A stretch of DNA of 64,000 bases, taken from the sequence record MT939492.1. One strand, 5' to 3'. The notes beneath the pieces are model-generated. The model did no database searches, was not told where the DNA came from, and worked only from the letters and a program-made list of their open reading frames with translations. The position numbers and the translations under genes are program-made. Shown here in pieces: positions 7,544 through 36,500 of the stretch; within the stretch, counting starts at the first letter, position 1; each line of letters begins with the position of its first letter.

Positions 7544-8911
7544 ATGACCAACAGTCTCCACAACCTTTTCGCCTCCATGGAGGCTGATGAGGCAAACGGC
7601 ACAGCTCAGAAAGAGCTGGAGTACGTGTTCTACGGCAAGCTGACCGACTTCACTGAACTGGAGCGGGCGGCAGGCAAGGAAACCCACGAACAGTGGGAAA
7701 TCCGCGTTGAAGCCGGTGACAAGAATCCCTTCCCGGGCTGCGTGCGTGTGCGCCGCTACCAGGGTGAACGCTACGTCCAGTGCATCAAGGTCATCACTCC
7801 CGGCGAAGACGCCAAGGACGAAGTCGAGCTGGAAGTCACCAAGGACATCTTCGAGTTCGTCAAGAAGCTGGCCACCGGTGGTAGCAACAAGGTTCGCTAC
7901 ATCTTCGAGATCCCCGAATCGAAGAACGTCTGGGAAGTCGACGTCTACGTCAAGCCCGACGGCACCTACGAGGAATGGTGCAAGATCGAGATGGAGGTCA
8001 AGGAACCGGTCGACTCGGTGCCGAAGCTTCCGGTCTCTTGTACCGACGTGATCGTCAACCAGTACAAGAACCGTACCGAAGACGAACACGCCAAGGTCAA
8101 GGAACTGATGAGCACGGTGTTCATCCTGGGCAATCAGTACCTGGCCGGCGCCAGCGAGCTGGGCAATGCCACGCAGGCTACCGACTCCGAGCCGGAAGGC
8201 GAAGCTGACAACCAGGACACCGGCGAAGGCGAACAGCAGACCGACACCGGTTCGGATGAATCCAAGACCGACGACCAGAACAAGGACGGTGGTGATGAAG
8301 GTTCCGCTGAAGGTGATGACAAGAAGGACGAAGGCAAGGGAACCGAGGACGCCACCGCTTCCACCGAGTCCCACGACCACTCCCACCAACCCATCGCCTC
8401 TGCCGACGTCGAAGGCGAAATCAGCGAAGCCCAGCGGGCGCTCCTGAGCGAGCTGTTCACCGGCGACATGATCGTCAACGATGGCCAGGAACAGATCTGC
8501 AAGGAACTGTTCAACCTGCGTGATCGTGGTCTGGTGGAATGCGGCGAGCAGGAAGGCGTGTGGCGCATCTCCGAAGCCGGCCGCGTGTACTACACCGAGA
8601 ACTACCGCATGGAAGACCTGGTGGCTGTGGAAAGCTATCTGGTGGACATGCAGGAACTGGCCGAGCGCGCCGAAGCGCTGGGTTCGGAAATCGGTGTGCT
8701 CACCCCCGTCGAAATGATGGACGACGAGCGTACCGCACCGCTGGTGGAAGAAGCGCGTGAACTGGCCAACCAGACCGCGCTGTCCAAGACCTACCCGACC
8801 GAAGACCCGAACACCATGATTTCCCTGGAGTTCGTCAAGAAGCTGTCCAGCCGCATCGACGCGGGCATGGAAGCTGCGCACAGCCGCATCGCACTGCTGC
8901 GCGGCCGCTAA
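7544..8911 (+). CDS. CYTH (triphosphate tunnel) domain protein with an acidic linker and C-terminal wHTH-like and helical domains
   Basis: KELEYVFY, EQWE, RVR, KVRY.F, WEVDVY and KIEMEV are CYTH motifs; ATG7544 has RBS gagg. Confidence 0.7.
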   Translation: MTNSLHNLFASMEADEANGTAQKELEYVFYGKLTDFTELERAAGKETHEQWEIRVEAGDKNPFPGCVRVRRYQGERYVQCIKVITPGEDAKDEVELEVTKDIFEFVKKLATGGSNKVRYIFEIPESKNVWEVDVYVKPDGTYEEWCKIEMEVKEPVDSVPKLPVSCTDVIVNQYKNRTEDEHAKVKELMSTVFILGNQYLAGASELGNATQATDSEPEGEADNQDTGEGEQQTDTGSDESKTDDQNKDGGDEGSAEGDDKKDEGKGTEDATASTESHDHSHQPIASADVEGEISEAQRALLSELFTGDMIVNDGQEQICKELFNLRDRGLVECGEQEGVWRISEAGRVYYTENYRMEDLVAVESYLVDMQELAERAEALGSEIGVLTPVEMMDDERTAPLVEEARELANQTALSKTYPTEDPNTMISLEFVKKLSSRIDAGMEAAHSRIALLRGR

Positions 8912-8913
8912 CA

Positions 8914-8952
8914 ACATACGAGGAGGGGCATCGCGCCCCTCCTCTATGCCGC
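8914..8952 (+). terminator. CATA...TATGCC-flanked hairpin
   Basis: acatac-gaggaggggc-atcgc-gcccctcctc-tatgccgc. Confidence 0.65.
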
Positions 8953-8961
8953 ATTAAAGGC

Positions 8962-8984
8962 TTTTCAAACCTACATTACCTAGG
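8962..8984 (+). promoter_or_regulatory. Putative early promoter, copy 2
   Basis: ttttcaaacctacattacctagg. Confidence 0.6.
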
Positions 8985-9046
8985 AGAGTCATGGCCTACG
9001 TTAATCCTGATAGCCCACGACCATTCTTTAAGAGAGGAGAACTACC

Positions 9047-9499
9047 TTGAAAATCCAGCGTACCATTACCGTCTTCACCCTGGACGGCGTCATCGATCAT
9101 TTCAACCACCAGGACGTCAACGCGGCTCTGAAGCCGTTCTATGCCCCCGGTCCGGAAGAGACCCTCAGGGTCGAACTGAACAAGACACAGAACCCCTCTC
9201 CGGTGGGTGGTCTGCCGACTCATCGCGGGTTCGTCGAACTGGACCTGTCCCTGCTCAAGGGTAACCGCCTGAACTGGCCGGCTGTCCTGTTGTACTACGC
9301 TCCGATGGACATGGAGCAGAGCAAGCGACAGGAGATCGACAAGCACATCCGCGAAACCCAGTTCATGCTCAAGGACTTCGTTCTGTTGTCAGGTCAGCTG
9401 ACGAGCGATTACTTTGCGCTGTTCATCAAGGACGACGGCGCCGAAGAGCAGCAGGCTTCGCTGAACATGGGCAATCTCGGTAACTACAGCGAACACTAA
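9047..9499 (+). CDS. Hypothetical protein
   Basis: TTG start with RBS gaggag. Confidence 0.75.
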   Translation: MKIQRTITVFTLDGVIDHFNHQDVNAALKPFYAPGPEETLRVELNKTQNPSPVGGLPTHRGFVELDLSLLKGNRLNWPAVLLYYAPMDMEQSKRQEIDKHIRETQFMLKDFVLLSGQLTSDYFALFIKDDGAEEQQASLNMGNLGNYSEH

Positions 9500-9501
9500 C
9501 G

Positions 9502-9933
9502 ATGCAGCTCTCCATCCCGATGGATCTGATTGCCACAGTAGGTCGTGAAACAATCAGGCGCATTGGGGAACACTCCATTGAGCCTGATTGGTTCATCCAT
9601 AGCTACTTCTACAACTGGCGTGAGTTGCGTTATGCAAACGAGCATGACGCAGAGCACGAACTGTACAATGAAGTAGCTGACTGGCTGGAGGAGTATTTCT
9701 TCGACCGCTACGATACCGACTTGGTCAACTCATCAGAGCAGTTGCGCGATGAGCTTACCGAGATGATGTGCAAAGGCCTGCTTCGTGTCTATGACGAACT
9801 GGAGCCTACGCTTGGACCACTGATGCGCGATACGTTTGCGCAGGACGAGTACCGTGACCCTGTTCACGTTGACCCGTTTGTAGAAGACGATAGGGTGATT
9901 ATCAATGTCAGAGAGTTTGATGACGTCGACTAA
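9502..9933 (+). CDS. Acidic hypothetical protein, paralog pair B
   Basis: 143 aa; packed operon. Confidence 0.75.
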   Translation: MQLSIPMDLIATVGRETIRRIGEHSIEPDWFIHSYFYNWRELRYANEHDAEHELYNEVADWLEEYFFDRYDTDLVNSSEQLRDELTEMMCKGLLRVYDELEPTLGPLMRDTFAQDEYRDPVHVDPFVEDDRVIINVREFDDVD

Positions 9934-10336
9934 ACTCTACATAGAGCCTGCGGGCACTCGTGTAGTGGGGCGTCGGTTGGTCAGACTACTGGCCGATGCT
10001 CACTTGGATTGGGAGATCATTTACCACATCATCCTGAAGTATTGGCTGGTGTACATTGACTTCCAGTCCAATTACGAATCCATCGAGATGATGACGATGG
10101 GTGAGTTGCTGTCCTACATCTACTCAGACGAGGACCGTACCGAGGACTCAGTTGCGCTCGAATCTGAAGTGATCATCGAGCGCAACTATAGTCAGATCCT
10201 TGAAGCGTTCGAACGCATCATTGAGAGCCTCTATCCGTACCTCAGTCCATTTGACGCGCGGATATGCTCCTTCGAGTTTGAGACGTTCACCGAGAATGGC
10301 GTCTTCATCTCGGTTCATTACGATCCACAATTCTAA
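9905..10336 (+). CDS. Acidic hypothetical protein, paralog pair B
   Basis: 143 aa; similar layout to 9502..9933; start uncertain. Confidence 0.7.
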   Translation: MSESLMTSTKLYIEPAGTRVVGRRLVRLLADAHLDWEIIYHIILKYWLVYIDFQSNYESIEMMTMGELLSYIYSDEDRTEDSVALESEVIIERNYSQILEAFERIIESLYPYLSPFDARICSFEFETFTENGVFISVHYDPQF

Positions 10337-10345
10337 GGGAGTCTC

Positions 10346-10747
10346 ATGGAAACCATGACTGGTCAGATCTCTCGTGATCGCTCGTACAGGATCAACGATG
10401 CTGGCCTCATCCTGATGGACACCTCGGTGCGGTCAGCCCCGCCGATCTACAACATCTTCGCCCCCACGTGGGACATGGTGCGTGGAGTGAAGGACGGCTA
10501 CCTGCCGTACACCGACATTGCCTACACTGAAGCCGACTACACTCGCGATTATCGGAAGATGATGATCAACAGTTGGCGGAGCCGTCAGCGGCAGTGGAGG
10601 GAAATCATGGAGCGCAAAGGCGTGTACGTGATCTCCTGCTACTGTCCGGAAGGATGCTTCTGCCATCGTTATCTGCTCGAAGGCTTCTTCAAAGAAATCT
10701 CTGAGAAGTACAACCTGCCCTACGACTACTACGGGGAGTTTAAGTAA
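10346..10747 (+). CDS. DUF488-like protein
   Basis: FAPTWDMV...YT..Y..MM..S...CYCP...CHR motif pattern. Confidence 0.65.
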   Translation: METMTGQISRDRSYRINDAGLILMDTSVRSAPPIYNIFAPTWDMVRGVKDGYLPYTDIAYTEADYTRDYRKMMINSWRSRQRQWREIMERKGVYVISCYCPEGCFCHRYLLEGFFKEISEKYNLPYDYYGEFK

Positions 10748-10764
10748 TCCCCAAAGGAACTACC

Positions 10765-11325
10765 GTGCCAACACACCTGCTGAAGATTTCCCCCCATGTG
10801 CTGGAAGACATCAGACGCGATGCGCAGTACAACCAAGATGCGCTTGCAACCTCTGATGAACTAAAGCAGAGTTTTAAGCAGGGTTATCAAACCGCCCGCG
10901 AGGAGATCATGGAACGTCTCTTTGCAGAGATCGAGGACGAGAAGCGCCGATCCGAGTTCAGAGGGTTCTTCTACCTCACCGGAATCGGCGATAACTTCGA
11001 TCGTTCGAACTTCCCTGTTGACGGCACCATGCCTGAACTGCCATGCGGCTCGTATGTCGCCACCGCACAACTGCCAGACGGTACGACGTTTGACATGATG
11101 CTGGAATGGAAACATCGTGAAGGTATCGACACCGATGACTACAGCCCACGCGACATCGCAGAGTTGCTGCGGGAACAAGCCCACAATCAGCATCCGGAGT
11201 TCGGCCCCCTGACGTCCTTCGTGCTGTCCACCTTCAAGAAAGATGAAGCCGGTATCAATCAGTGCTTCATCCTCAACACCCCCTTGAAATACAAGCCCCT
11301 TATCATCAACGGAGAAACACCTTGA
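10765..11325 (+). CDS. Hypothetical protein
   Basis: GTG start with RBS aagga. Confidence 0.75.
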   Translation: MPTHLLKISPHVLEDIRRDAQYNQDALATSDELKQSFKQGYQTAREEIMERLFAEIEDEKRRSEFRGFFYLTGIGDNFDRSNFPVDGTMPELPCGSYVATAQLPDGTTFDMMLEWKHREGIDTDDYSPRDIAELLREQAHNQHPEFGPLTSFVLSTFKKDEAGINQCFILNTPLKYKPLIINGETP

Positions 11326-12443
11326 AGAGTTTCATCACGCGTGCCAACGAGGCAGTGCAGGCCCAGCGGGTTCCCTACACCGACGTTCCCCACGCCCAGC
11401 GGCGCGTGTATGCGGAACTGGTGAAGGAAATCGTCGAGGAAGTTCTGGCCGACTGCGTCAAGACGCACTCCATCCAGACGACGTGGAGCTTCCCGACCGA
11501 ATACGAGTACATGAACTTGATGCCTTACGTACAGCTCAAGGTCAATGTCGATGCACTCGACTCGGTTGAGCGGGCACTGCACGAGTGCCGCAAGACTCTC
11601 AACACGCGCGGCATCCACATGCGCCTGGGTCGCAACAACGACAACACCGCCATCATGGTGAGACTGGTGGACTTGTTCGCCATCGTGGACCGCACGGTGG
11701 TTCATGGGAAGTGCTTCAATGGCCCGGGTGGTGTACGCGATAACCTCACCGAAGCCGGCTGGATCGACAAGACCTTCCCGTATTGGTTGGTCAAGCTCGA
11801 TGGTCTGTACCACGAAGTCCAGCGCAGTGAGGAAGGCCCGAAAGGCTTGATCGGCATCAGCGCATGGAAGTTCATGATCGACTACGCGGCCTCGCGTTAC
11901 AAGATCAAGTTCCTCACCCACTGGAACGATCACAAGCGCAAGGAAACCATCGCCGCTTACGTGCCGAGTTACATGAAGGACGACACGGCAGTGTTCGACG
12001 ACGACATCCGCTACCTGTTGGCCTGCAACCGCAAGGACTTCACCTACCTCGACACCTCAGCGCCCGAGACCATTCGTGACCAGGTCCGTCCGGTGATCCA
12101 AGGCCTGCGCTTTGCCAAGACGATTGGCGACTTCATCCAGCACTGCCAGTGCTCCGGTATCGGTACTGACTTCATCCCTAGTCAGATGCTGCTGGACTCT
12201 GCAAAGAGCCAGAACATCACCAAGGATCTGGAGGCCTCCATCCTCTGGACGGCCATGACCCTGCCGGTGACCACGACCTTGTACCAGCGTCAGCTGGAGG
12301 TGAAGAACCTGACCATCGACCTCGGTACTGGCAACTGGACGGACTCCAAGTTCAGTCCCATGCTGCAGACCCTGGTCGAACCGCTGGCTTCCATGATCCG
12401 CAATTACGAGCGCGTTTCCAAGCTCAAGTTCTTCAAGGAGTAA
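11322..12443 (+). CDS. Hypothetical protein
   Basis: TTG11322 has RBS ggag and overlaps the upstream stop; preferred to ORF-track start 11262. Confidence 0.75.
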   Translation: MKSFITRANEAVQAQRVPYTDVPHAQRRVYAELVKEIVEEVLADCVKTHSIQTTWSFPTEYEYMNLMPYVQLKVNVDALDSVERALHECRKTLNTRGIHMRLGRNNDNTAIMVRLVDLFAIVDRTVVHGKCFNGPGGVRDNLTEAGWIDKTFPYWLVKLDGLYHEVQRSEEGPKGLIGISAWKFMIDYAASRYKIKFLTHWNDHKRKETIAAYVPSYMKDDTAVFDDDIRYLLACNRKDFTYLDTSAPETIRDQVRPVIQGLRFAKTIGDFIQHCQCSGIGTDFIPSQMLLDSAKSQNITKDLEASILWTAMTLPVTTTLYQRQLEVKNLTIDLGTGNWTDSKFSPMLQTLVEPLASMIRNYERVSKLKFFKE

Positions 12444-12445
12444 TC

Positions 12446-13000
12446 GTGTCGCACGTCACCCGCATGCAGTTGGCGTTCGCGCCGACCGATATCGTTCAGG
12501 GTCAGGTGATGTCCAGCCTGATCACCGCCGAGAAGGCTGTCAAGGCCGCCGAGGAAACCATGAACTCCATGTTCATGGCAGCCTACCTCAACGCACTGGA
12601 GAAACTGACTGACCGCGCCAACTACATCCGGGAGTACATGGATGACTACCTGGAAAGCGCGCGGAAGGACAACGGAGCCAACGTTGTCCTTGGACGCATC
12701 GAAGGTCAGAAGTTCGTACTCCGTGCAGCTCACGCGGACTGGTACGAGGAGTACACCAACTCCGACTACATGGCCTGCATCAAGGAGATGCTCGGCGGTC
12801 CCAATCGTCCGATGACGGCGATGGACATCAAGCACGCGGGCTGCGAACTGATCCTTGGCTACGACTACGAGAAGGAGCAGTGGCGCATGCTCAGTCCCCT
12901 GCTCGCCGGTCGTCTCAGGTTCCCAGCCTGCCGCGCGAGCGTGATTATGTCGGTGGAGGTCGCCGGCGACTCCTTCACTGTATCGCGCACCTTCACTTAA
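12446..13000 (+). CDS. Hypothetical protein
   Basis: GTG start coupled to the upstream stop, RBS aaggag. Confidence 0.75.
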   Translation: MSHVTRMQLAFAPTDIVQGQVMSSLITAEKAVKAAEETMNSMFMAAYLNALEKLTDRANYIREYMDDYLESARKDNGANVVLGRIEGQKFVLRAAHADWYEEYTNSDYMACIKEMLGGPNRPMTAMDIKHAGCELILGYDYEKEQWRMLSPLLAGRLRFPACRASVIMSVEVAGDSFTVSRTFT

Positions 13001-13031
13001 TCCTTCCTTCCCAAAGAGTAACAAGATCAAC

Positions 13032-13670
13032 ATGGATCGAATCACTGCTGTCAATCTGCTCAACACCGATGCCGGTCGTCGTGAACACGGTGGTCAGGCC
13101 AATGGCTGGAGCGCAGGCGTCACGCTGCTTGCCAACCAACAGGACCACGAAACCAGTTACATGAAGATGGTGACGTTGGGCGACATCACCATGCGTCCGT
13201 CCACTGCGGTGTTCCTCTACGAGAACGCTCAGGGCGTACACACCGTCGGCGTCCCCTACGAAACCATCTTCCATCCTGAAGACCAGGGCGCCTTCGAGCG
13301 CAGCGGCGCGGCTCTGCTGTACCAGATGACCGTGGCTCTGGCCAAGTTCGCCATGGACACTGGCTTCCCGGCTCCCGATGGTGAGATCGCTCTGATGCTG
13401 CTCTCCAGCGAACGTGGCGGTCTGATCGGTGAAGGTGAAGAAGACGGCGTCAAGGTCAGCTTCTTCCCGCATGCCGTGGAGAAGGTGCTGGTCATGTACG
13501 AAAAGCGCGTGGGCAAGCTGCCGCCGTTGGGTCAGGCGTACCGTAACAAGGGGCTGAGCGGCACCGCCGGTGCGTTCGGCCTGCAGGCTCAGTTGCAGGT
13601 TGCCCGTGCCAAGGGTCGTAACCGCGCCAGCAAATCCAACAAGCGCAAATCCAAGAAGAAGGTGCACTGA
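13032..13670 (+). CDS. Hypothetical protein with a basic C-terminal tail
   Basis: Ends KGRNRASKSNKRKSKKKVH. Confidence 0.75.
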   Translation: MDRITAVNLLNTDAGRREHGGQANGWSAGVTLLANQQDHETSYMKMVTLGDITMRPSTAVFLYENAQGVHTVGVPYETIFHPEDQGAFERSGAALLYQMTVALAKFAMDTGFPAPDGEIALMLLSSERGGLIGEGEEDGVKVSFFPHAVEKVLVMYEKRVGKLPPLGQAYRNKGLSGTAGAFGLQAQLQVARAKGRNRASKSNKRKSKKKVH

Positions 13671-14341
13671 TGGACAAGGCCACTTTGGAAATGCTGTCCC
13701 ATGTCGGCACGTCCTTGAGTTACAGCCTGGATGATGTCGGTTCCCGAGTAATGGACCAGATCAACGATGCGCGGGAGAAAGCTGTCGGTGAGCTTCGCGC
13801 GAACCGCCCCAAGGCCAACAGCCTGGCACGCCTGCGTATCCACACTTTCCAGGAGCGCTTCTCCCCGCATCAGTACATCCGGGAAGGCTTCGACGCCATT
13901 GAGGTGGATTTCCGGCAGGACGGCATGATCACCCTGCACTACCTCAACGTTGGATTCAACGCAGCGACGGTACAGGATCTGAGTACCGTTACCAAGATGT
14001 TCGCAGATGAGATCCACCCGAAGCTGCCGGGGGACATCTCGACCAATCCCAGCGCGGTGATGGGATACCTGCGTGACCTTTCCTCTAGGTTCTGGCTTGT
14101 ATCGACGCCATCGGAAGGGGGTATCTGGTGCTGGTATGTCAACCCGAGTCGTGCGATGGTCATGGAGCTTGCGCATAGCGACATGTACGGTGGGGACGAG
14201 TGGGCCTCCATGCGCGATCTGGCACGTAAGCGCATCCTCGTCAAGAACGCCGGCCCGAAGTTGCGAGGGCATCTGTTCGCCGGTCCCAGTGAGCTACTAC
14301 CTTTCGGGAGAGTAGCACCATCCGAGGAAGCGCAGGCATGA
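13670..14341 (+). CDS. Hypothetical protein
   Basis: TGATG coupling. Confidence 0.75.
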   Translation: MDKATLEMLSHVGTSLSYSLDDVGSRVMDQINDAREKAVGELRANRPKANSLARLRIHTFQERFSPHQYIREGFDAIEVDFRQDGMITLHYLNVGFNAATVQDLSTVTKMFADEIHPKLPGDISTNPSAVMGYLRDLSSRFWLVSTPSEGGIWCWYVNPSRAMVMELAHSDMYGGDEWASMRDLARKRILVKNAGPKLRGHLFAGPSELLPFGRVAPSEEAQA

Positions 14342-15689: not shown

Positions 15690-15735
15690 ACGGCTGGGAG
15701 GGTGACCTCCCAGCTATGCCGCATCTTTTTTTTTT
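15683..15735 (+). terminator. GGCATA...TATGCC-flanked hairpin with U-tract
   Basis: ggcataaacg-gctgggagg-gtga-cctcccagc-tatgccgcatctttttttttt. Confidence 0.75.
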
Positions 15736-24614: not shown

Positions 24615-26900
24615 ATGCAGCGCCTCAACATTGCCTCGCGTCCGCACAACCCCTACAAGCAGGGCATCGACAACCTGAAGTCGCTGGTCCAGAACCAGTC
24701 TGCCAACTTCGGCGGCAAGGAAGCGACCAGCGCGATCCTGTCGATGGAAAGCCTGAGCGATTCGGCCTTCGCCACCCTGGAGCAGACCGCCCACGGCGTG
24801 TCGGCCAGCCTGGAAAGCCACTACAAGGGCCTGGACAACTCGGTCAAGATCGACCTGACCGAAGCCCAGAAGACCGCCGGTGCCATGGTTGCCATGGCCT
24901 TCGCCGATCCGGCCGCCTACCACAAGGCCGCCCTGAACAAGAAGGCCGTGTCGCAGGAAGGCATCCGCATGTCCTACGCCAGCAACTTCGGCGCTGCCGG
25001 CCTGCTGGACTACACCGACACCGTCGAACCGGCCCTGGAAGCCTTCGACGACCGCGAACTGCAGAACTCGATGGCCTACTCCATCCAGTTCAACGTCGAA
25101 GCTGCCCGCCAGGACGACGCTGCTGAACTGGCCTACCCGACCATCGTGGTCGGCCCGGACCAGGCTGCCATCGACGTCACCGTCGGTCGCTACCAGGTCC
25201 ACAAGGAAATCCGTCGCAAGTCCGACGGCACCGAGACCAACTGGCACCTGCGCAACCTGATCGACGCGCACCGTGACCACACCATCCTGGCCGACGAAGA
25301 AACCCGCGTCTACCCGGTCGTGGCCGAAGACGACAGCAACGCTGCCTCGTTCGTCGACGCCGCCATCGTGGGCGAGCGCGTGGTGCAGGTGTCGGGCTTC
25401 GACATCACCACCGCCCCGCTGGTGGTCCGCAAGAAGCACGAAATCATCGGCCTGTCCGCTCACCCGGAACTGATGGCCAACCAGATCCTGGACAACAGCG
25501 ACGCGCTGGATGCCCGCCTGGCCCTGGAAACCCTGTACGTCCAGCTGGCCGACGGTGAAACCGCCGTGCCGTTCGACGTCAGCCGCCTGCCGCTGAACAG
25601 CTTCCTGAAGACCATCGAAGGCCAGAGCAAGGATCTGTCGCTGCGTTTCACCAGCGTCGGCGCCCAGCTGAACTCGGCCACCACCACCGTCGACCAGGCC
25701 GTGCCGGCCATCGTCGCCGACCTGACCACCGCCAAGTACACCGTCAAGCTGCGCCTGCAGGCCTTCGGTGATGCCAACGTGCAGTACGGCACCGTCCGCG
25801 TGGACGCGCCGGAAGTCGAAGTCTTCGCCATCCTGGACGAGAACTCCGACCTGGTCGACCTGAAGTCCGGCGCCGGCCTGGCGATCGTGGACAAGCTGAA
25901 GGACGCCCGCATCGTCGGTTACGACCTGAAGGCCTACCGCACCAACAGCAACCGCCGTACCCGCGGCATGCAGCTGGACGTCCAGTGGGAAACCGAGCGT
26001 TACGTGATCCCGCTGGGTTCGCCGATCAGCGCCCCGAGCCCGATCACCGCCTCGCGCGATGCCTCGGACCTGAAGGCCCTGACCAACGCCGTGCGCATCC
26101 GCAACAGCAACAACGCGATCACCACGATGTTCAACTACGCAGCCGCGCTGCGTGACTACGTGGCCGGCCCGCAGATCAAGGGCTCGATCGCTCCGCTGGA
26201 AGGCATGGGTCGCTTCCTGGTCAAGCCGTTCTACGAAGAGCTGGAACTGGACCTGGAGAAGGAAATCAACTCCATCCGTTCGTGGGACAAGGCGTTCGAC
26301 GTCTCGGCCTGCCTGGTCAACGCGGTGCGTGACATCACCTACCGCATGTACCAGCAGTCCGGCTACCAGCAGGCGCTGGACGCGCACGCCGGTTCGGGCA
26401 ACAAGCCGATCCTGGGCCTGATCACCGACCAGGTCATCACCCGTCACCTGATGGTGCAGGGCGATACCCGTACCTGGGCGACCGTGTTCGACGAAGCCAA
26501 GCAGGCCGTTTCGGTCGACGACCGTGTCGATGGTCACATCGTCATGTTCTTCGTCCGTCCGTCCGCGCAGGGCGCCGATCCGCTGGCGTTCGGCAACTTC
26601 GCCTGGATCCCGGAACTGACCAGCTCGGTGATGGTGAACCGCAACGGCGCCACCATCAAGGAAGCGATGGTCCAGCCGCGTGCGCGTCACTTCAACAACT
26701 GCCCGATCATGGCGATCATCAAGGTGAAGGGCCTGGACAAGGTGCTGACCCTGAAGTCGACCCTGGCCGTGGACAGCACCGACGTGACCCCGGACGCCGG
26801 CAACGGCGGCAACGGCGGCTCGACCCCGGGCACCGGTGGCAACGGCACCGATCCGGGTGCTGGCGGCAACGGCGGCACCGGTGGCGGCACCGGCGGCTAA
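24615..26900 (+). CDS. Major capsid protein precursor (phiKZ gp120-like)
   Basis: Strongest codon bias in the window; about 760 aa; PALE|AFD processing-like site; RNLIDA, TNSNRRTRG and PELT motifs; RBS aagga before ATG24615. Confidence 0.88.
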   Translation: MQRLNIASRPHNPYKQGIDNLKSLVQNQSANFGGKEATSAILSMESLSDSAFATLEQTAHGVSASLESHYKGLDNSVKIDLTEAQKTAGAMVAMAFADPAAYHKAALNKKAVSQEGIRMSYASNFGAAGLLDYTDTVEPALEAFDDRELQNSMAYSIQFNVEAARQDDAAELAYPTIVVGPDQAAIDVTVGRYQVHKEIRRKSDGTETNWHLRNLIDAHRDHTILADEETRVYPVVAEDDSNAASFVDAAIVGERVVQVSGFDITTAPLVVRKKHEIIGLSAHPELMANQILDNSDALDARLALETLYVQLADGETAVPFDVSRLPLNSFLKTIEGQSKDLSLRFTSVGAQLNSATTTVDQAVPAIVADLTTAKYTVKLRLQAFGDANVQYGTVRVDAPEVEVFAILDENSDLVDLKSGAGLAIVDKLKDARIVGYDLKAYRTNSNRRTRGMQLDVQWETERYVIPLGSPISAPSPITASRDASDLKALTNAVRIRNSNNAITTMFNYAAALRDYVAGPQIKGSIAPLEGMGRFLVKPFYEELELDLEKEINSIRSWDKAFDVSACLVNAVRDITYRMYQQSGYQQALDAHAGSGNKPILGLITDQVITRHLMVQGDTRTWATVFDEAKQAVSVDDRVDGHIVMFFVRPSAQGADPLAFGNFAWIPELTSSVMVNRNGATIKEAMVQPRARHFNNCPIMAIIKVKGLDKVLTLKSTLAVDSTDVTPDAGNGGNGGSTPGTGGNGTDPGAGGNGGTGGGTGG

Positions 26901-28226: not shown

Positions 28227-28254
28227 CAACAACCATCCTTAGCCCGAGGAAACG

Positions 28255-29877
28255 ATGGCGGACAAACATTACTCCAGGCTGCTCAGGGAAGTCACTCCAC
28301 GACTCAACCCTGACATCGCAGACGGTCTGGCAACCAAGCACGTGCCCTATGTTGACAAGATGGTGGACGATATCTTCCGCACCGCAGCTGCCGGTTTTCC
28401 GGACGGGCTGAAGTACGACGGATTCGCCCGCTGTACGCCGAGGGAGACCTTCAGGGAGATCACCAAGCGGGTCAACAGCCAAAGGACTTGGGAAACAGCA
28501 AAGACCAGTGCACATCTGAACAAGTACATGTTCAGCTACATGGGTCAGCCACTCGATCCGAGGTACATCTATCTGCCCAACGTCATGGACGGTGGTCTGA
28601 TGTATCTGCGTGGGTCGTTGTTCGCAGTGGCGCCGGTTTTGGCGGACCGGGTATTCAGCATCAACGCAACATCAATCTTTATCCCATTGCAAGGCGCCAA
28701 GCTCACTTTCGAGCGAATGTATTACACCTTCATGCGTGACGGCATTCAGGTTGACGCGCACTTGATCCATGCCTCGTTGTACAATCACACGGCGGAGGGC
28801 AAAGCAGAACTGGCCCGCCAGCCGATCCGTGGTGACTCGACGATGGCACATTACCTGTTCTGTCGCTATGGCGTGGAAGAGACCTTCAAGAACTACGGCG
28901 GCACCAACATCGTCGTGGGGAACTCGGCTTGGATCAACGAAGAAGCCTACCCGGCCAAAGACTGGGTGATCTTCTCCTCAGCGCAGGTCAAGCCACAAGG
29001 TGTTCGTCTGAAGATCGGTCACCCGGTCTCGGATATCCGCATGGCCATCCCTCGGGAGAACTATTCGGACGCAGTGCACATCCTGGTTGGCAGTTTCTTC
29101 TATGCCATTGACCATTTCCCCGAACGGTTCCCGCTGGAGTTCGCGCTCGACATCACCCGATGGCAGCTCGCACTCGGCATCTTCCTGTTCGGCGAAGGAC
29201 AGAGCGAGGGTAAGATCCTGGAGCGCCTCGACGACCACCTTGCGTCGCTCGATACCTACATGGATCGCAACTCCCGCAAGAAGCTCCTGGAAGATGGAGT
29301 GATCGTGGAGACGGTCTATGACCTGTTCTTCCACATGATCGACACCTTCCACAGCCGACTGACCGGTAATGCCAAGGACATTGCCAGCATGTACGGCAAG
29401 CAGTTCGTGATCCTGAGGTACATCGTCTTCGATATCAACAAGGCGATCTACAACTTCAGCTTCAACCTGCGTAACTCCAAGAAGCCGATCTTGAATCCCA
29501 AGGAGATCAACGCCGAGCTTCGGCGTACTCTGCGGACTGACTTGATCTTCCAGCTCAATCAGCCCACGCACAACGAAGTTACTTCGGTAACGTGCCCTGG
29601 TGACAACAAGGTCTTCAAGATCACCTCGCGTCTGGTGGCCCAGACCAGTACGACAGGTGGTCGCGGTGGTAACAAGGGTAGCATGAGCGACCCTGCACGA
29701 CAGCTGCACTCCTCCATGGCCGAGGTGGGTAGTTTCCGTAACATGTCTAAGAGTGATCCCACTGGTCGGGACCGCGCAAATGTGTACGTGCGCCTGTCCC
29801 ACGATGGACTGGTGGAAAGGTCACCCGCACTTCGTCCGATCCTGGATGATGTGCAACAGAGAATCCAACGGCGTTAA
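28255..29877 (+). CDS. Non-virion RNA polymerase beta subunit (phiKZ gp123-like)
   Basis: 540 aa; YLPNV..GG...LRGS and HSSMAEVGS...KSDPTGR motifs; position downstream of the capsid gene as in phiKZ. Confidence 0.72.
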   Translation: MADKHYSRLLREVTPRLNPDIADGLATKHVPYVDKMVDDIFRTAAAGFPDGLKYDGFARCTPRETFREITKRVNSQRTWETAKTSAHLNKYMFSYMGQPLDPRYIYLPNVMDGGLMYLRGSLFAVAPVLADRVFSINATSIFIPLQGAKLTFERMYYTFMRDGIQVDAHLIHASLYNHTAEGKAELARQPIRGDSTMAHYLFCRYGVEETFKNYGGTNIVVGNSAWINEEAYPAKDWVIFSSAQVKPQGVRLKIGHPVSDIRMAIPRENYSDAVHILVGSFFYAIDHFPERFPLEFALDITRWQLALGIFLFGEGQSEGKILERLDDHLASLDTYMDRNSRKKLLEDGVIVETVYDLFFHMIDTFHSRLTGNAKDIASMYGKQFVILRYIVFDINKAIYNFSFNLRNSKKPILNPKEINAELRRTLRTDLIFQLNQPTHNEVTSVTCPGDNKVFKITSRLVAQTSTTGGRGGNKGSMSDPARQLHSSMAEVGSFRNMSKSDPTGRDRANVYVRLSHDGLVERSPALRPILDDVQQRIQRR

Positions 29878-29902
29878 GCCAAGAACAGCGGAGTAAGCCA
29901 AG

Positions 29903-32119
29903 ATGTCACGTTCCCGTTCCCGCCTGCCTGTCGACCCGGAGTTTGTCGACAAGGGGTATTTCGTCCGTGGTTTGCCCGAGCGCATCCCGGACCGCTACAT
30001 TCCCAACATCCAGATCCCCGGTGCCATCGAGCGCGACCTGCCGTTGATCGCAGGTGTTGTGATGCAGGAACTGCAGGCCGAATACGGCCGGCATGAACTG
30101 CGCAATTTCCTGTACAACATGATGGCCGACAACGAGTTCGACAACAAGGACTACGATGCTCTCATCGGGTCGGTTGCCGAAGCGTTCTTCTTCTTCTACG
30201 AAGGCGAGCGCATGGATGCCGAAGAGGCCCTGCGCAAGGCCACCAAGATCGTGGTGAAGTTCACCATGGCGCTCTTCGTGGAAAAGTACCCGGAACTCGA
30301 TGAATACATCGACAACCGCATGGACCGCGAGCTGCGCGATGCCATGGATGATGGTCGCGACCTGATCGCCGATATCGAAGACTTCAGCCGTGGTGGTGGT
30401 CGTCGTGGTGGCCGTGGTCGTGATCGCGATGACCGTGATGATCGTCGTGACGACCGTCGTGGTGGTGGTCGTCGTGGTAGCCGTGAAGATGGCGGCTACC
30501 ATGGCAACGGCACTCGCGGCTACCGTGATGGTGGTCGTCGTCGTGACGAGGCCGATGAAGAAGCAACGGCTACGCGTCGTGGCGGCATGGCTGGTGCAGT
30601 ACGTGCGTCGAGCAAGGGCGACCGTACCGAGCGCACCGATCGTGATGATCGTCGCAACCGCCGTGACTCCTCGCGCAATGATCGTGATCGCGAGTTCAGC
30701 AACGGCGATATCGAAGAGCGCTCTGGCAACGACCTGCACGCGGTGGAAGAAGAGCTGCATGCTTCTCCGCAGGGCAGCAACTACCAGAACCACGAAGCAC
30801 AGCGCAAGGCCGACGCCAAGGGTGGTGCAATGCCGAAGCTGTTTGACCGCAGCGCCGGGCGTGTCGTGTCCTCCGGTGAAGTTGCCAAGGACAAGGTGCT
30901 GATCGACAACATCCGTGCCGGTCGTCCCTATGACCGCGTGGACCTGGAAGACGGTTCGTTCGTCGTCCCGGAAGTGCTGAGCACCCACAAGAAGACCTTC
31001 AGCCCGGAGCAGCCGTTCGCTCTGGTCTACGACCCCGCCCTCTTCGTGAAGTTCCACCGGGTTTACCCGGATGGTCGTGTCGAAGAAATCGTGAAAGAGC
31101 GCAACGAAGATATGGACTACCTGGACCTGGAAACCAACGACAACCTCAAGACCAAGGCGCAACATCAGCGTCGCCAGGGTCGTGTGGATCCCCGCTACGA
31201 TCTGGTGGCCAACATGCACAAGAAGGGCGAAAAGATGGTCGGCGTCGAGCCGGCAGCGCCGAAGGACGTCGAAGAAGGCGCCGACGCTACCTTCGACAAC
31301 CTGGTCTTCGGCCAGGATCTGGAAGTGGGCGACGTGGCAACCACCGTTCCGGCCATGTCGGTGGCTCAGGCCATCGCGATGACCGAAGTGGTGTCGGCCG
31401 AGAATGAAGGTGAGGACACCCCCAAGGAGTTCTACATCGACATCCTCACCCCGCACCTGGTGGAAACCAACCTGATCGGCGCGTTCCTGGCCATCGGCAA
31501 GGAAAAGACCGTGCAGGCTGCGCTGGCCAAGTTCTCCCAGCTCCAGGGTCAGGAAGACGTGCCGGTTCGTCTGTGGCATCAGCTCAACGATGCGCTGACC
31601 GCTCGCGTCAACTACCTGCTGAAGAACTCGATGGGGCTGAGCTGGACCATCGATACCGCTGCCGATGACTTCGGTGATCTGCTGAAGGCGATGCAGGCCA
31701 AGCCGGCTGTCGGCGTGGCTGCTGCCAACCTGCTGAACTCCAAGGTCGACGAGGTGTTCAACTCGGTGATGCGTGTGCTCAAGGACGAGGAGCTGGCTCG
31801 CTACTCCGAAGAGTACGGCAAGCCGGGTGCCGGTCTGCACTGGCTGGTATTCGCTCGTCGCCAGTCGGTGACGCTGCTGAGCTGGTCCAGCGCTGACATG
31901 GGCCCGTCGCTGGTCAACGGTGGCGCTGTCTCCGAGCAGCTCTACCCGAGCCTGCACCAGTCGCTGGAGCGTCTGCTGCAGCGTACCTCGATCGTCGGTG
32001 GCGAGTTCTGCCATCGTTACCTGGTGACCGAGGACAACGTGGTGTACGACCTGCAGGTGGGCTTCTTCAACAACAGCCACTACGTACTGACGCCGTCCAA
32101 CGTCAGCATCATGGGCTAA
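29903..32119 (+). CDS. Conserved protein with a central Arg/Gly/Asp-rich disordered region
   Basis: RGGGRRGGRGRDRDDRDDRRDDRRGGGRR low-complexity tract at about 30380-30720. Confidence 0.8.
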   Translation: MSRSRSRLPVDPEFVDKGYFVRGLPERIPDRYIPNIQIPGAIERDLPLIAGVVMQELQAEYGRHELRNFLYNMMADNEFDNKDYDALIGSVAEAFFFFYEGERMDAEEALRKATKIVVKFTMALFVEKYPELDEYIDNRMDRELRDAMDDGRDLIADIEDFSRGGGRRGGRGRDRDDRDDRRDDRRGGGRRGSREDGGYHGNGTRGYRDGGRRRDEADEEATATRRGGMAGAVRASSKGDRTERTDRDDRRNRRDSSRNDRDREFSNGDIEERSGNDLHAVEEELHASPQGSNYQNHEAQRKADAKGGAMPKLFDRSAGRVVSSGEVAKDKVLIDNIRAGRPYDRVDLEDGSFVVPEVLSTHKKTFSPEQPFALVYDPALFVKFHRVYPDGRVEEIVKERNEDMDYLDLETNDNLKTKAQHQRRQGRVDPRYDLVANMHKKGEKMVGVEPAAPKDVEEGADATFDNLVFGQDLEVGDVATTVPAMSVAQAIAMTEVVSAENEGEDTPKEFYIDILTPHLVETNLIGAFLAIGKEKTVQAALAKFSQLQGQEDVPVRLWHQLNDALTARVNYLLKNSMGLSWTIDTAADDFGDLLKAMQAKPAVGVAAANLLNSKVDEVFNSVMRVLKDEELARYSEEYGKPGAGLHWLVFARRQSVTLLSWSSADMGPSLVNGGAVSEQLYPSLHQSLERLLQRTSIVGGEFCHRYLVTEDNVVYDLQVGFFNNSHYVLTPSNVSIMG

Positions 32120-32126
32120 GGCCTGA

Positions 32127-32146
32127 TGGGGAGGGAAACCTCCCCA
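32127..32146 (+). terminator. Hairpin (GAAA loop)
   Basis: tggggagg-gaaa-cctcccca after stop 32119. Confidence 0.6.
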
Positions 32147-32324
32147 CTGTAAAAAGAAACAGCTGTAGACAATAATGTGGAGCTAGAGTTCCTACCTAGT
32201 GCTCGAAACTCCTAACGTGATAGCAGCTTAGCTGCATTGGCTAACGACGGTTGGTCAATAGGAAAGCACGCGCCGCTCCACCTTCCACCGGTGCGCCGCT
32301 GCTGCCCCATCCGCGTTACCACCT

Positions 32325-32375
32325 GCATACCCCCCGCCCCGTTCTGCGACGGTGGCGGGGGATTGCTTTTATGCC
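32325..32375 (+). promoter_or_regulatory. GCATA...TATGCC-flanked hairpin upstream of 32397
   Basis: gcatac-cccccgcc-ccgt-tctgcg-acgg-t-ggcggggg-attgctt-ttatgcc. Confidence 0.5.
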
Positions 32376-32396
32376 TTCTACCTAATGGAGCTGTCT

Positions 32397-33383
32397 GTGA
32401 ATACCCCGATGTTTTCCCTCGAAGACGATACCAACACCGTCTACGATCGTACCCCCCTGATGACCACCATTGGTGCGCGCATCACTGATTTCAACAACCG
32501 GATGGAATATCGCAACCTCGAAACCCGGATGGTTGTCTCTCCCGATGAAGATCAGGAGAAGCTGCCGGGCGACTTCGTTGCCATCGAGTTCGAGCAGTTC
32601 CCCACGGAGAACGAATCGTTCGCCATTCGTCAGGAACTGATCATGTCCGGCCTGTACATGCGTGCACACCTCGATGAGGGGCAGGCATCGCTGGAACAGG
32701 TCAAGGCGATCGTTGGCATGCTCGAAGTCCACTGGGGGCCGATGTATGATGCCGCCATTGCGGTCATCGACCTCATCCAGTCCGGCAAGGTGAATCCGAT
32801 CACCGTGCGCAAGTCCGACGAACTCGGTGACCATGAGCAGACCGTGTTCATGTCTTCCTACGGTGTCCCGCGTACCATGCAGGACATGGTGATCGATGAG
32901 ATCGGCCTGCCTCTGCGCACCAAGCTCAACGAAGCTCTGCGTAGCGATGGCCTGCCGTTTGTCATGGTCTATTCCCGCACCGTGGGTGAGGCGGTCTACG
33001 TCTTCTATCAGGAAGACAACCCCGACGCCATCAGCCTGCTGGACGTGGATGACTACATCGATCTCATCGCCCGTTCTGAAGTCGATCCGGCGATGCTGGC
33101 CGAAGCTGACAAGTTGACCATGCGCACCCGCCTGCTCAACGACATCATCGCCAAGTACGTCAGCAACCTCAACGACATCGCCACCAACACCAAGGGTGAT
33201 CTGAATTCGCCGCTGGTGCGGATGTTGCACGACGAGCTGACTTCCAACGAGTTCACGGCCGCTGCCGAGAAGCTGTTGGCGATCTCCGGCACTGAGCAGC
33301 TCATCCGCAATGCCTCGGCACATCACCTGTTCGTCCAGCTCACCCTGGCCGATCTGACCAACGACAAGAGCGTCATCGCTTAA
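32397..33383 (+). CDS. Hypothetical protein, probably virion-associated
   Basis: GTG32397 has GGAG 6 nt upstream; in frame with ORF 32352. Confidence 0.7.
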   Translation: MNTPMFSLEDDTNTVYDRTPLMTTIGARITDFNNRMEYRNLETRMVVSPDEDQEKLPGDFVAIEFEQFPTENESFAIRQELIMSGLYMRAHLDEGQASLEQVKAIVGMLEVHWGPMYDAAIAVIDLIQSGKVNPITVRKSDELGDHEQTVFMSSYGVPRTMQDMVIDEIGLPLRTKLNEALRSDGLPFVMVYSRTVGEAVYVFYQEDNPDAISLLDVDDYIDLIARSEVDPAMLAEADKLTMRTRLLNDIIAKYVSNLNDIATNTKGDLNSPLVRMLHDELTSNEFTAAAEKLLAISGTEQLIRNASAHHLFVQLTLADLTNDKSVIA

Positions 33384-33416
33384 TACCTTCATATCGCCTG
33401 GTGACATAGGCGCTTT

Positions 33417-33506
33417 AGCCCACTCCTATCCGGGGGGTGGGCTCTTTTTTACCGTCTTCTTTTTTTTTGTCTTCAGGGCATAGAGGGAGGCCCCGAAGGG
33501 CCTCCC
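33417..33506. terminator. Two hairpins between convergent genes
   Basis: agcccactcc/ggggtgggct plus U-tract for the + gene; gggcatagagggaggccc-cgaa-gggcctccc for the - gene. Confidence 0.7.
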
Positions 33507-33512
33507 ATTTCC

Positions 33513-36500
33513 TCAGTTCTGCTTAGCCTGTTCCATCGAGACGATCTTGACGGGCAGTCGGAATGCGCCATCGGCGTTGGCACGTGCCAGACGCTTCATG
33601 CCATCCAGAATGACCACACGACCATCTTCCTCGCGCACGCCTACCAGCGGGTAGCTGTAGTCGGCACGGGATACCAGACGCGGGGAAAGCGAGCCGGCCT
33701 GCTGCAGGTTGAACCGCAGATCCTTCACTTCCACCGACTCCGGTTCAATGGAGTGGGCTGCACGCAGCAGCGGGTTGATCGGACGACTCACGGCCTCGTA
33801 GAAGTAGGTACGATCATCGGCTTCCTGGTAGAGGTCGGCAATGGACTCGGTGGATGCCTCCTCACCGGTTTCCTCCTCAGCGCCAGTTTCGGCCGCTGCC
33901 TCTTCCTCGCCGGTTTCGGTCTGCTCCTCTTCTTCCTGCTCCTCTTCCTCTTCACCCGTGTCGGTCTGCTCTTCCTCACCGGTGTCCTGCGTTTCGTCAG
34001 GATTCTCGGTGTCAGTGCCGAACTCGTCCGCACCAGTGCCCATTCCGTCATCAGCGCCCGGACCAGCGCCACCGTCATCCGGCGGAGTTTCGTCCTGCGG
34101 CTCACGTGCCTCGACCAACTTCTTGATCTTGTCCATGTACTTGCCGAAGACCTTGTACAGCGTCTTCATGTGGTCATGGGTGGAATCGAAGATGTTGACC
34201 TTGCTCACGCCCTTCTCATCCAGCTCCATCAGCTCGAACAGCTCGGGCATGATGTTGTTGGTGCGCAGGTACTGACGCAGGTAGTGCGCCTTGGTCAGAG
34301 CGACCAGGCCTTCCACGGCACTGGAGATATCGGTGTTCTGATCGCCACCGCCATCGAACATTTCCTTGCTGATGTAGGCAGGCAGGACTTCATCCAGGGC
34401 TTCGCGGTACTCCTTGTACGCGTCGATCTGAACCTTGACCTTGGTCGTGTCCGGCGAAGGCAGTTCGCAGATGATCGAGTCGATGAACAGCTTGACGACG
34501 TTGTCGACGTTCAGTTCCTGACCATGGGTCTGGATGTACTGACGGACTTCATCGCCCAGCTTGCCCTTGTTCTCGACGATGATCTTGCGCAGACGATCCA
34601 GCAGCGTGCCGGAGTTGTAGGTGTACTTCTGCACGAAGTCAGTGACATGCGGGCAGAACTGTTCCTGCGTCTTCATCACGCGCTTGGTCAGCAGCAGGTT
34701 GTTGGTCACCGCCGTGGTCGCAAACTCCGGACCCTGGGCGTTGTCCACCATCTCCACCGGGATACCCAGCGACAGCGAGTGGTTCTTGCGCAGCAGGTTG
34801 TCCAGATCCAGATCCGGCTTGTTGACCGATGCTGCGAAGTCCTCGGCGTTGACTTCCGTGTTGGGGTAGCCATCGTTACCACTGACCACTACTTCCACAC
34901 CTGCGTTCTGCAGGAAGGAGATGATGTCCAACGGGTTGGAGGCACCCAGCGGGTAAGCCTGCTGACGGTTCTTGGAGAACTCGCCGATGATGAACTCGAC
35001 GGTATCCACCGGATCGTCGTCACGCTCATCGAGCTTGATGTTCAGCTTCGTACGACCCACCGAGTTACGCAGCGAACCCATCGTGTTGGCGAACATCAGG
35101 ATCGCCCGCATGCCGCCGAGGATCTTGGTGTCTTCCAGCAACGAACGACCGATGCCGAACTTGTTGTAGTCGATGGCGAAGTAGGTCACCATTTCAGCCG
35201 GGACGTACAGCAGACGCGTGTCCTGGTTGGCCAGGGTACGGGCCAGCATGATCCGGTAGACTTCTTCCGGACGAGCGATGGTGACGTTGGCACCTGCAGC
35301 ACCTGCACGCAGACGTGCCAGAACGTTCTGCTCGACCATGTCCGTGTAGGCGCGCTGGAGCGACTCACCGTCGATCTCGTTGTTGCCCTTCATGCCGTAC
35401 GTGCCGCGATGGGTCGACTGGATCAGCTGACTGATCATGTCGTTGTTCGCGTTCACGTTCTGGTTGAGCTGACCGTAGTAGTCGTCCTGGGTCGCCTTGT
35501 TGACCAGATGACCCTGCTCGTCGCAGACCAGGAAATAGCCGATGTGATCGGACGGATCGGACGGTACGAATACCGGGATCACTGCTTCCGACGGCGCCTC
35601 GATGACCAGCGGATGGCCCTTGGTCTTGGACTTGAGCTGATCACGGGTGTACAGGGTCTGCACCGGCATCGATGCGTAACGGCGCTGGGTGTACAGTGCC
35701 GACTGCACTTCCATCAGGGTCGGCTTGCCGTCAGTGCCAAGCGACTCCGTAGCCACCGTCACCTTGGGCAGGTTCAGCAGACCCTTGCGGTTGTTGCGAC
35801 GCTTGAGGATGGCGTCACTGCGATGATGAATGGCAGCCTGCGCCAGCGCAGGCATCTTCAGCATCTCGGGGTTGTCGGTGATGACCAGTCGACCGGCCTT
35901 GGCGGCATTGCTATCGCCGAAGGGACGGAAGACGGGGTTGTAGCTCTGGTTGGCATGCTGACCACTGCCACTGAACGACTCCAGAGCGAAGCCCACGCCA
36001 GCGGCCGTAGAAGTGCCCTTGGCGGCATCGCCAGCCGCTTCCTTAGGCTGACCCAGCCAGCCCAGGCAATTGCCGTCCACGCCTTCCACGGCAGCCTTGA
36101 CGGACTCCATGGAGGTGCGGGTCGGGTTGTTGATGACGTCGTCGATCGTGGACTCGGACAGGATGATCATCGGGCGGGAGCCGCGGTGATACAGGATGTC
36201 CTCCAACAATGTCGGAAGTCGGCTGTCCATCTTATAGACTTGCGAGAAGTGGGTAGAAACCACGTCCAGCAACAGGCCGGAGAGCTCGCTGTCGAAGATG
36301 CCATCCTGGACGCGATAGTTCAGCTTCGCGTTGATCATGTCCTTCGGGGACAGGATCGAGCTGACCATGATCTGCATGTTCAAACGCAGATCCGGCAGCA
36401 GCTGCATCAGGTTGGCCGAGTCGGTGACGTTGGTGGCCGTGTTGTCACTGAGCTTGGTGAAGAACTGATCACCCGGCAGGTTCACTTCACGACGGCGGAA

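Follow-up and report, generated by a model that had tools for sequence, protein, structure and literature searches.

Xanthomonas phage Xoo-sp14 (MT939492.1) is a phiKZ-like jumbo phage with a genome of 232,104 bp. The stretch considered here, hereafter the window, is 64,000 nucleotides long and corresponds to bases 62001-126000 of that record. It contains two genes of interest, Xoosp14_98, encoding a CYTH-like protein, and Xoosp14_126, encoding the portal; tblastn against Xoo-sp14 gives 99.8% identity for the former (in a longer, GTG-start reading) and 100% for the latter. By tblastn the portal additionally matches portals and virion structural proteins of 290 jumbo-phage records. In each protein an acidic, disordered segment ends in the five residues ASTES and is followed by a further domain. 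The principal features are given below in window coordinates, with lengths in amino acids (aa) and with structure predictions from AlphaFold2 (AF2) scored by the predicted local distance difference test (pLDDT).

7544..8911, + strand: Xoosp14_98, CYTH-like protein of 455 aa, intact open reading frame (ORF) (GenBank annotation; phrog_14791, E 5.7e-40)
7568..7582, + strand: FASME, residues 9-13 of Xoosp14_98, a candidate protease or targeting motif followed by acidic residues and shared with Xoosp14_10
8156..8371, + strand: acidic, Gly/Thr/Gln-rich disordered linker of Xoosp14_98, residues 205-276 (pLDDT <50; hypervariable, with indels)
8357..8371, + strand: ASTES island of Xoosp14_98, residues 272-276; a candidate cut after E275 would leave S276-R455, 180 aa
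8426..8908, + strand: C-terminal domain of Xoosp14_98, residues 295-455, winged-helix-like and then long helices (AF2)
33513..36647, - strand: Xoosp14_126, portal, 1044 aa, C-terminal domain appended, intact ORF (phrog_3004, E 5.5e-221, residues 16-927)
33843..34112, - strand: acidic disordered tail of the portal, residues 846-935 (from composition; variable, with indels, in close relatives)
33843..33857, - strand: ASTES island of the portal, residues 931-935; a candidate cut after E934 would leave S935-N1044, 110 aa
33516..33842, - strand: ParB/sulfiredoxin (Srx)-fold domain of the portal (phrog_17560), a paralogue of Xoosp14_29

Within Xoosp14_98, QDTG stands at residue 224, TDTG at 233 and ASTES at 272, and the linker contains QDTGEGEQQTDTG, with its first base at 8213 and its last at 8371. 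The corresponding positions in the portal are 887, 895 and 931, and the tail contains QDTGEEEQTDTG, with its first base at 33989 and its last at 33843. A first-pass annotation of the window had reported these strings at these places, with an unrelated domain behind ASTES in each gene, and its account of the anatomy is borne out: the strings are present exactly there, and homology searches and AF2 identify a winged-helix/long-helix domain in one protein and a ParB/Srx domain in the other. The genome-wide search for QDTG and ASTES that it had suggested was also made, by translating all 232 kb of the genome in six frames. ASTES is confined to Xoosp14_98 and the portal, and among real genes QDTG and TDTG are likewise found only in these two, the remaining matches being antisense shadow frames. 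No other purely acidic low-complexity stretch that a low-complexity scan and direct profiling found in the phage comes near the two linkers in length; the portal tail was profiled separately, as the greedy gene picker of the scan overlooked the portal. Proteome-wide counts here and below used the rest of the Xoo-sp14 genome beyond the window.

Both genes have features that complicate automated gene calling. An antisense shadow ORF of 1045 aa (window 33753-36890, + strand) spans the whole portal gene and exceeds it in length, and a length-based gene picker preferred it to the real gene. Xoosp14_124 and the CYTH-like gene have comparable long shadow ORFs over them. An alternative start for the CYTH-like ORF lies at a GTG 28 codons upstream (window 7460-7543) and gives the reading used in the tblastn comparison above; GenBank and all relatives use the ATG at 7544.

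Ancestry and likeness of the acidic tails

As judged from relatives, the ancestors of both protein families already had acidic tails. The Xanthomonas phages RTH11 and LucasX have a CYTH-like protein of 204-208 aa that ends where the Xoo-sp14 linker begins, and their portals (953 and 967 aa) end in an acidic or Gly-rich disordered tail with no domain after it. The CYTH-like protein of Ralstonia phage RSF1 (ORF094) has a 95-residue acidic tail with nothing behind it. Since acidic tails occur in both families without an appended domain, the tails pre-exist, and the novelty of the Xoo-sp14 clade is the domain added behind each tail.

Metagenomic relatives of the fused form were found for both proteins, and they divide the shared strings into two parts. 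In the CYTH-like fusions, the QDTGE...QTDTG portion is altered at 97-98% identity, unrecognizable at 83% and deleted at 79%, and it is also unconserved in close relatives of the portal. The [A/V/P]-[S/A]-[T/N]-E-S island, by contrast, is retained in the CYTH-like fusions down to 33-40% identity (as ASTES, PATES, VSNES, ASNES and ASTES). The core [SA][TN]ES is present exactly once in every fusion protein down to 33% identity, always in the corresponding position, between flanks that are indel-rich and unalignable. Among portal relatives EEASTESI is invariant in four of four while the tail elsewhere varies with indels, and in the relative with a 72% identical tail region four of the five ASTES codons differ, all synonymously. 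The relatives thus leave a non-conserved and probably coincidental QDTG/TDTG part and a conserved five-residue island; judging by its conservation, ASTES alone stands out beyond chance.

Plain shuffling makes the linkers as a whole seem alike. Their local alignment score of 96 (67.9 +/- 8.4 in shuffles) was reached by 23 of 5000 composition shuffles, and their three shared 5-mers (0.14 expected) by six of 3000. However, natural acidic linkers are patchy, and the significance given by plain shuffles is inflated for that reason. When six CYTH-family linkers were compared with four portal tails from other phages and metagenomes, unrelated natural pairs spanned z-scores from -0.4 to 4.2, against 3.8 for the Xoo-sp14 pair; two pairs without any special relation gave 4.2 (P0010 x P0014) and 3.8 (P0011 x P0013). 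Because unrelated linkers reach the same scores, the linker-wide likeness is attributable to patchy acidic composition and was rejected as a signal. For the linker as a whole, this is the outcome that the first-pass annotation had itself named as counting against its proposal. In the next relative phage (P0006/P0014, portal tail region ~72% identical), the two linkers do not have even one 5-mer in common, and ASTES itself is not shared.

At the DNA level, the first-pass annotation had also noted a similarity between the linkers. This likeness exists in the form of three exact matches of 11, 13 and 12 nt, and it is mostly explained by codon bias: the longest was equalled in 29 of 500 in-frame codon shuffles, and 11 of 15 identical residues have identical codons where 7.3 are expected from phage codon usage (p = 0.04). 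The DNA identity of the linkers is therefore mostly about what codon bias gives.

These data bear directly on the proposal of a reusable linker-plus-cleavage cassette of common descent, spread from gene to gene by recombination or gene conversion and hitching cargo to virion proteins. In its favour, the three shared 5-mers are co-linear with similar spacing (48 residues from QDTG to ASTES in Xoosp14_98 and 44 in the portal), six DNA 11-mers are shared where 0.6 are expected under codon shuffling, and the codon identity lies slightly above expectation. Against it stand the 13-nt limit of exact DNA identity, the next relative's linkers without a common 5-mer, the alteration or loss of QDTG/TDTG in relatives at 79-98% identity, and a portal tail that matches in position the passenger-free tails of RTH11 and LucasX, with the acidic tail of RSF1 likewise ending bare. 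Neither DNA identity beyond codon bias nor conservation as a unit in relatives combined with absence from ancestral genes, the marks of a mobile cassette, was found. The cassette was consequently rejected on codon statistics, relatives and ancestral tails, and we regard it as very improbable.

A different possibility is that the segments are plain flexible tethers that are never cut, joining the halves of ordinary two-domain proteins by acidic low-complexity linkers. The ParB/Srx domain would then remain on the portal ring, the CYTH-like and winged-helix domains would cooperate, the shared strings would be a compositional coincidence, and ASTES would be kept for a local structural reason, for example as a domain cap. 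The ordinary range of the linker-wide similarity, the unconserved QDTGE and QTDTG and the near-expected DNA identity all suit such tethers, and the chance of finding [SA][TN]ES in a shuffled linker, 2-4% each, is small yet not negligible. The position of the island in the CYTH-like family argues the other way. It lies ~18-38 residues ahead of the folded domain (~18 in Xoosp14_98), between flanks that cannot be aligned, and is for this reason not a domain cap there. Overall, uncut tethers are a possible but rather doubtful explanation, and further evidence on them is given below.

ASTES as a candidate prohead protease site

The maturation proteases of phiKZ-like phages have a short recognition rule. 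SPN3US gp245 cuts after A-X-E, with Ser preferred at P1' and Val/Ala at P4, and the phiKZ protease also uses S-X-E, for example in gp93 at SLE-13 (PMC10052503, PMC5694885). The A-S-T-E↓S of both Xoo-sp14 proteins (the arrow marking the candidate cut) conforms to [S/A/G]-x-E↓, with P4 occupied by Ala and P1' by Ser. Three further features are relevant to this rule:

Record 164923-165690, outside the window: Xoosp14_178, a phiKZ gp175-type head maturation protease (phrog_3014, E 1e-71)
35745..36647, - strand: N-terminal region of the portal, residues 1-301, a candidate propeptide with SME-181↓S, ALE-223↓S and ATE-301↓S
24615..26900, + strand: major capsid protein, with SME-45↓S and ASLE-67↓S in its N-terminal propeptide region, and ALE-142↓A

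The Xoosp14_178 gene adjoins virion-RNA-polymerase-type genes, as in SPN3US. Its product has SLE-202↓S at the C-terminus, and the SPN3US gp245 counterpart autocleaves at AQE-203 (PMC10052503 Table 2). Similar motifs mark Xoo-sp14 head proteins. In the internal head protein Xoosp14_10 (phrog_2497), SME-11↓S corresponds in position to the cuts in gp53 and gp93 (residue 12 or 13), and ALE-61↓S and SLE-107↓S lie further on. ALE-142↓A of the capsid protein aligns with the SPN3US-type maturation site ATE-130, and the candidate sites in the N-terminal region of the portal may be compared with ATE-161 and AQE-254 of the SPN3US portal gp81 (PMC10052503 Table 2). These parallels in position favour a local [S/A]-x-E rule in Xoo-sp14.

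Across the proteome, the fuller pattern A-S-x-E-S occurs six times where 1.4 are expected, a count reached in two of 300 shuffles. The sites are E11 and E107 of Xoosp14_10, E67 of the capsid protein, E934 of the portal, E275 of the CYTH-like protein and a sixth position, in a giant protein; three of the six fall in head-protein propeptides, which speaks against uncut tethers. More generally, head proteins have clusters of [SA]xES motifs in their N-terminal regions. The looser [SAG]xE within the first 30 residues is uninformative as a marker of head proteins, being present in 49 of 154 proteins.

The island could instead be another kind of short linear motif, such as a modification site (e.g. 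for phosphorylation), a site for a host protease or another phage protease, or a signal for import into the phage nucleus. Conservation of an island in a disordered region is consistent with any of these, the phage has genes for a dual-specificity phosphatase and a protein resembling a ClpXP specificity factor, and the neighbours of the CYTH-like genes (see below) suggest an intracellular role connected with nucleic acids. However, nothing specific ties S-x-E-S to such systems, and the motif class is found chiefly in the propeptides of head proteins and at the C-terminus of the protease itself. Such a motif is accordingly judged unlikely.

Xoosp14_67 is an unannotated protein of 568 aa that matches no PHROG. 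Four [SA]xE↓S motifs are packed into ~85 residues close to its N-terminus (positions 55-138, in a numbering of the ORF that starts 17 residues upstream of the annotated start). The cluster resembles a multi-site head-protein propeptide.

Passenger domains of the portal and the CYTH-like protein

The appended domain of the portal has the ParB/Srx fold with a DGxHR-type loop region, as indicated by fold and profile matches. Its 110 residues match the free-standing Xoosp14_29 (BLASTP E 6e-10), and a 33-sequence profile of the phrog_17560 family matches the N-domain of the ParB/Srx-like protein SbnI (E 1e-6). The AF2 model of the domain has a pLDDT of 90.1, with disorder limited to the first four residues after the candidate cut; the domain begins 4-5 residues past that cut, co-linear with its free-standing paralogue. 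The top 50 Foldseek matches are to Noc, ParB, Srx, SbnI and serine kinase, with probabilities up to 1.0 and E-values of 0.007-0.09. A Pfam search of the C-terminal domains of both proteins and of Xoosp14_29 gave no matches, nor did a phmmer search of the portal domain against PDB sequences. In its fold and its DG-x-[H]-R loop region, the passenger resembles ParB, Noc, KorB, sulfiredoxin, SbnI and the serine kinase; unlike them it is minimal (~110 residues), has no helix-turn-helix or dimerisation domain and falls below Pfam cut-offs. The phrog_17560 family also has an N-terminal Y-x-E...STF motif of its own. Within its loop, D84, G85 and R88 are invariant, and Lys takes the place of the near-invariant His (H87) in the portal clade, a loss that could suit a purely structural or binding role and to that extent favours a domain that stays tethered.

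Xoosp14_29 sits among nucleotide-metabolism genes (dTMP kinase, thymidylate synthase), and the phage therefore has one intracellular-type copy of the domain and one portal-borne copy.

The same domain is found on other carriers. By tblastn, it is free-standing in phage EL, and in the RP12, RP31 and FLC phages it forms a C-terminal fusion with a virion-type RNA polymerase beta'N subunit. RP12 ORF042 is orthologous to Xoosp14_173 (42% identity over 545 aa, with the DFDGD motif and the size of gp240, the SPN3US virion RNA polymerase (vRNAP) beta'N protein, a head ejection protein); unlike its orthologue, Xoosp14_173 lacks the ParB/Srx-like domain. Past the orthologous part, RP12 ORF042 reads ...AIE↓SFSLVNALE↓G... 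before the domain begins, and a metagenomic relative has ...PALE↓SWS... at the equivalent junction. In PA5oct gp343, annotated 'structural protein, ESI-MS/MS', a 137-residue leader is followed by ...ISE↓S and then by the domain, which suggests that the passenger is capsid-borne beyond the phiKZ group too. I/L-x-E is the cleavage rule of T4 gp21-type proteases. Three different carriers thus have the passenger behind a Glu-type site, and two of them are virion-associated (one by homology, one by annotation). This recurrence is the strongest argument that the portal ASTE↓S is a release site, a reading that is plausible for the portal; an uncut tether does not explain why RP12-type phages place the same passenger behind A-x-E↓S on a different, capsid-packaged carrier. 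A wider reading, in which phrog_17560 domains would be capsid-delivered passengers that switch between carriers (the portal, vRNAP beta'N or a leader of their own) and would be cut loose in the head to reach the cell together with the DNA, and in which the CYTH-like/winged-helix protein would represent a second cargo obeying the same hitch-and-cut rule, is offered only tentatively and is on balance doubtful.

Xoosp14_98 comprises a CYTH-like N-terminal domain, the acidic disordered linker and a C-terminal domain of winged-helix and long-helix structure. The N-terminal domain is only tentatively assigned as CYTH: it matches Pfam CYTH PF01928 at E 0.002 with 18.4 bits, below the 23.2 cut-off, its AF2 model has eight strands with a pLDDT of 45-73, and its Foldseek match to the NE1496 triphosphatase has an E-value of 0.31 and a probability of 0.66. 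In the model of the whole protein, built on a nine-sequence alignment, residues 188-288 have a pLDDT <50, with ASTES at 272-276 among them. The C-terminal domain has block-mean pLDDT values mostly of 79-91, with a dip to 61-64 at residues 411-430, and matches the phrog_2440 'transcriptional regulator' family (E 7.9e-6). A fold search with the whole fusion model returned nothing at E <= 0.001, and no free-standing homologues of the winged-helix C-terminal domain were found in phage records or in a set of 5.8 billion proteins.

Hints of capsid residence for the CYTH-like protein come from its motifs. FASME occurs only twice in the whole proteome: Xoosp14_98 has it at residues 9-13 (...LFASME↓ADE...), and the internal head protein Xoosp14_10 at residues 7-11 (...FFASME↓SED...). 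Similar N-termini, of the form S-[LM]-E, are found in internal head proteins of RTH11. A10, S11, E13 and A14 are invariant in the CYTH-like family. Xoosp14_98 has two motifs of the form A-S-x-E-[SA], each of them conserved within the family. FASME and the A-S-x-E-[SA] pair were both noticed post hoc. The gene context of a distant CYTH-like fusion (L018) consists of small unannotated genes and is uninformative. A protease release site in the CYTH-like protein is putative, and processing in the same way as the portal passenger is somewhat doubtful, if conceivable.

Other low-complexity and repeated features were noted. Xoosp14_124 (window 29972-32119), between the capsid and portal genes, has a long mixed-charge low-complexity region of Arg, Gly and Asp (RGG/RD repeats), and Xoosp14_225 has a similar RD/RE-rich region. 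Xoosp14_129-135 (window 39450-48491, - strand) form a tandem array of ~7 paralogous genes, several annotated as virion structural; six have near-identical N-termini (M-[DE]-[VI]-C-P-L-A-K...L-[IV]-L-[DEN]-L-[IV]-N), and that of the first, Xoosp14_129, is more diverged.

Proposed release in the capsid and relation to known systems

The explanation favoured here is that two independent domain additions have a common protease-type release site and that their tails are not a shared module, a proposition we hold at about even. In the Xoo-sp14 lineage, two unrelated proteins with acidic C-terminal tails would each have acquired a further domain at the tail end: the portal a 110-residue ParB/Srx-fold domain, and the CYTH-like protein a winged-helix/coiled-coil domain. 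Portal C-termini point to the capsid interior, and engineered C-terminal fusions to the T4 portal form particles (PMC9026906). The C-terminal tail of the Xoo-sp14 portal would likewise extend into the prohead interior, where the Xoosp14_178 protease could cut after E934. Twelve ParB/Srx-like copies would thereby be freed in the capsid beside the DNA and might exit with it at infection. That the portal passenger is indeed cut free in the head seems to us an evenly poised question. In the CYTH-like protein, a cut after E275 would part the two domains and would require entry into the prohead, for which the only hint is the FASME N-terminus in common with the internal head protein. Formally, this cut would suit the pattern of propeptide removal, as the N-terminal 275 residues would be lost. 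The portal passenger is a C-terminal piece, an arrangement of which the protease itself and T4 Alt are the only known examples.

Several points weigh against this explanation. The motif itself is common: [SA]xES has no proteome-wide enrichment (33 observed against 39.9 expected, z -1.2) and neither has [SAG]xE (z -1.9), while [SAG]-x-E is short and frequent in acidic tails, with nine instances in the portal tail and five in the CYTH-like linker. The match alone is weak evidence on these grounds, and the case for a protease site rests on the conservation and placement of the island. For the portal, that conservation is itself weaker evidence, because ASTES abuts a conserved domain and the four relatives are close (65-97% tail-region identity). 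The A-S-x-E-S pattern was, like FASME, noticed post hoc. The known SPN3US substrates all lose N-terminal propeptides, with only the protease itself trimmed C-terminally; release of a C-terminal passenger from the portal would thus be unusual, and this rarity of C-terminal processing again suits uncut tethers. Homologues of the CYTH-like gene are found in replication and nucleotide-metabolism neighbourhoods; they adjoin DHFR (RTH11, LucasX) or a helicase and an RNA polymerase subunit (Goslar), and they are annotated as hypothetical even where their neighbours are marked as structural (RP12). No Xoo-sp14 virion proteome was found in the literature, and cleavage of either protein is a prediction. 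Of the first-pass proposal that cargo domains are hitched to virion proteins by a cassette and released by the prohead protease, the part that stands is a credible ASTE↓S site at the domain junction, in view of its fit to the rule, the Xoosp14_178 gene, its conservation, the surrounding disorder and the occurrence of the passenger on another packaged carrier.

Release within the head would have parallels in several known systems. As with the substrates of phiKZ gp175 and SPN3US gp245, the phage encodes a protease of the same family, the predicted cut falls behind the Glu of [S/A/G]-x-E (P4 Ala/Val, P1' Ser) within acidic disordered sequence, and the released piece would remain in the capsid. 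It differs from them in that the portal would release a folded C-terminal domain and that the CYTH-like protein is no known head protein. In T4, diverse passengers bearing a capsid targeting sequence (CTS), the internal proteins IPI-III and Alt, are similarly loaded in the head and freed by the maturation protease gp21 for delivery with the DNA, and Alt is also processed C-terminally (PMC9026906). The T4 tag is an N-terminal stretch of ~10 residues that binds the scaffolding core, in contrast to a portal carrier with an acidic tail of ~90 residues. Toxin fusions of the MuF/SPP1 gp7 type (Zhang et al. 2012, PMC3482391) resemble the portal in having a variable C-terminal passenger on a portal-associated head protein that is predicted to travel in the capsid. 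Their carrier is MuF rather than the portal, their passengers are toxins, and the releasing peptidases, where present, are papain-like; a Pfam search of the Xoo-sp14 portal matched no family, MuF included, and the carrier is the phrog_3004 portal. Relative to these systems, a portal as carrier and a folded C-terminal passenger are new variants.

Should cleavage not occur, the finding shrinks to two ordinary acidic linkers. If it does, the portal would be a natural cargo carrier of a kind not described so far, and a natural counterpart of the engineered portal and CTS fusions of T4. It would offer phiKZ-like phages a new route for loading early-acting proteins into the capsid, and it would provide the first functional context, that of a capsid-borne protein acting on incoming DNA, for a widespread and uncharacterised family of ParB/Srx-like phage proteins. 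The presence of A-S-x-E↓S where a disordered tail ends would, in addition, become a simple rule with which processed head proteins may be predicted in unstudied jumbo phages.

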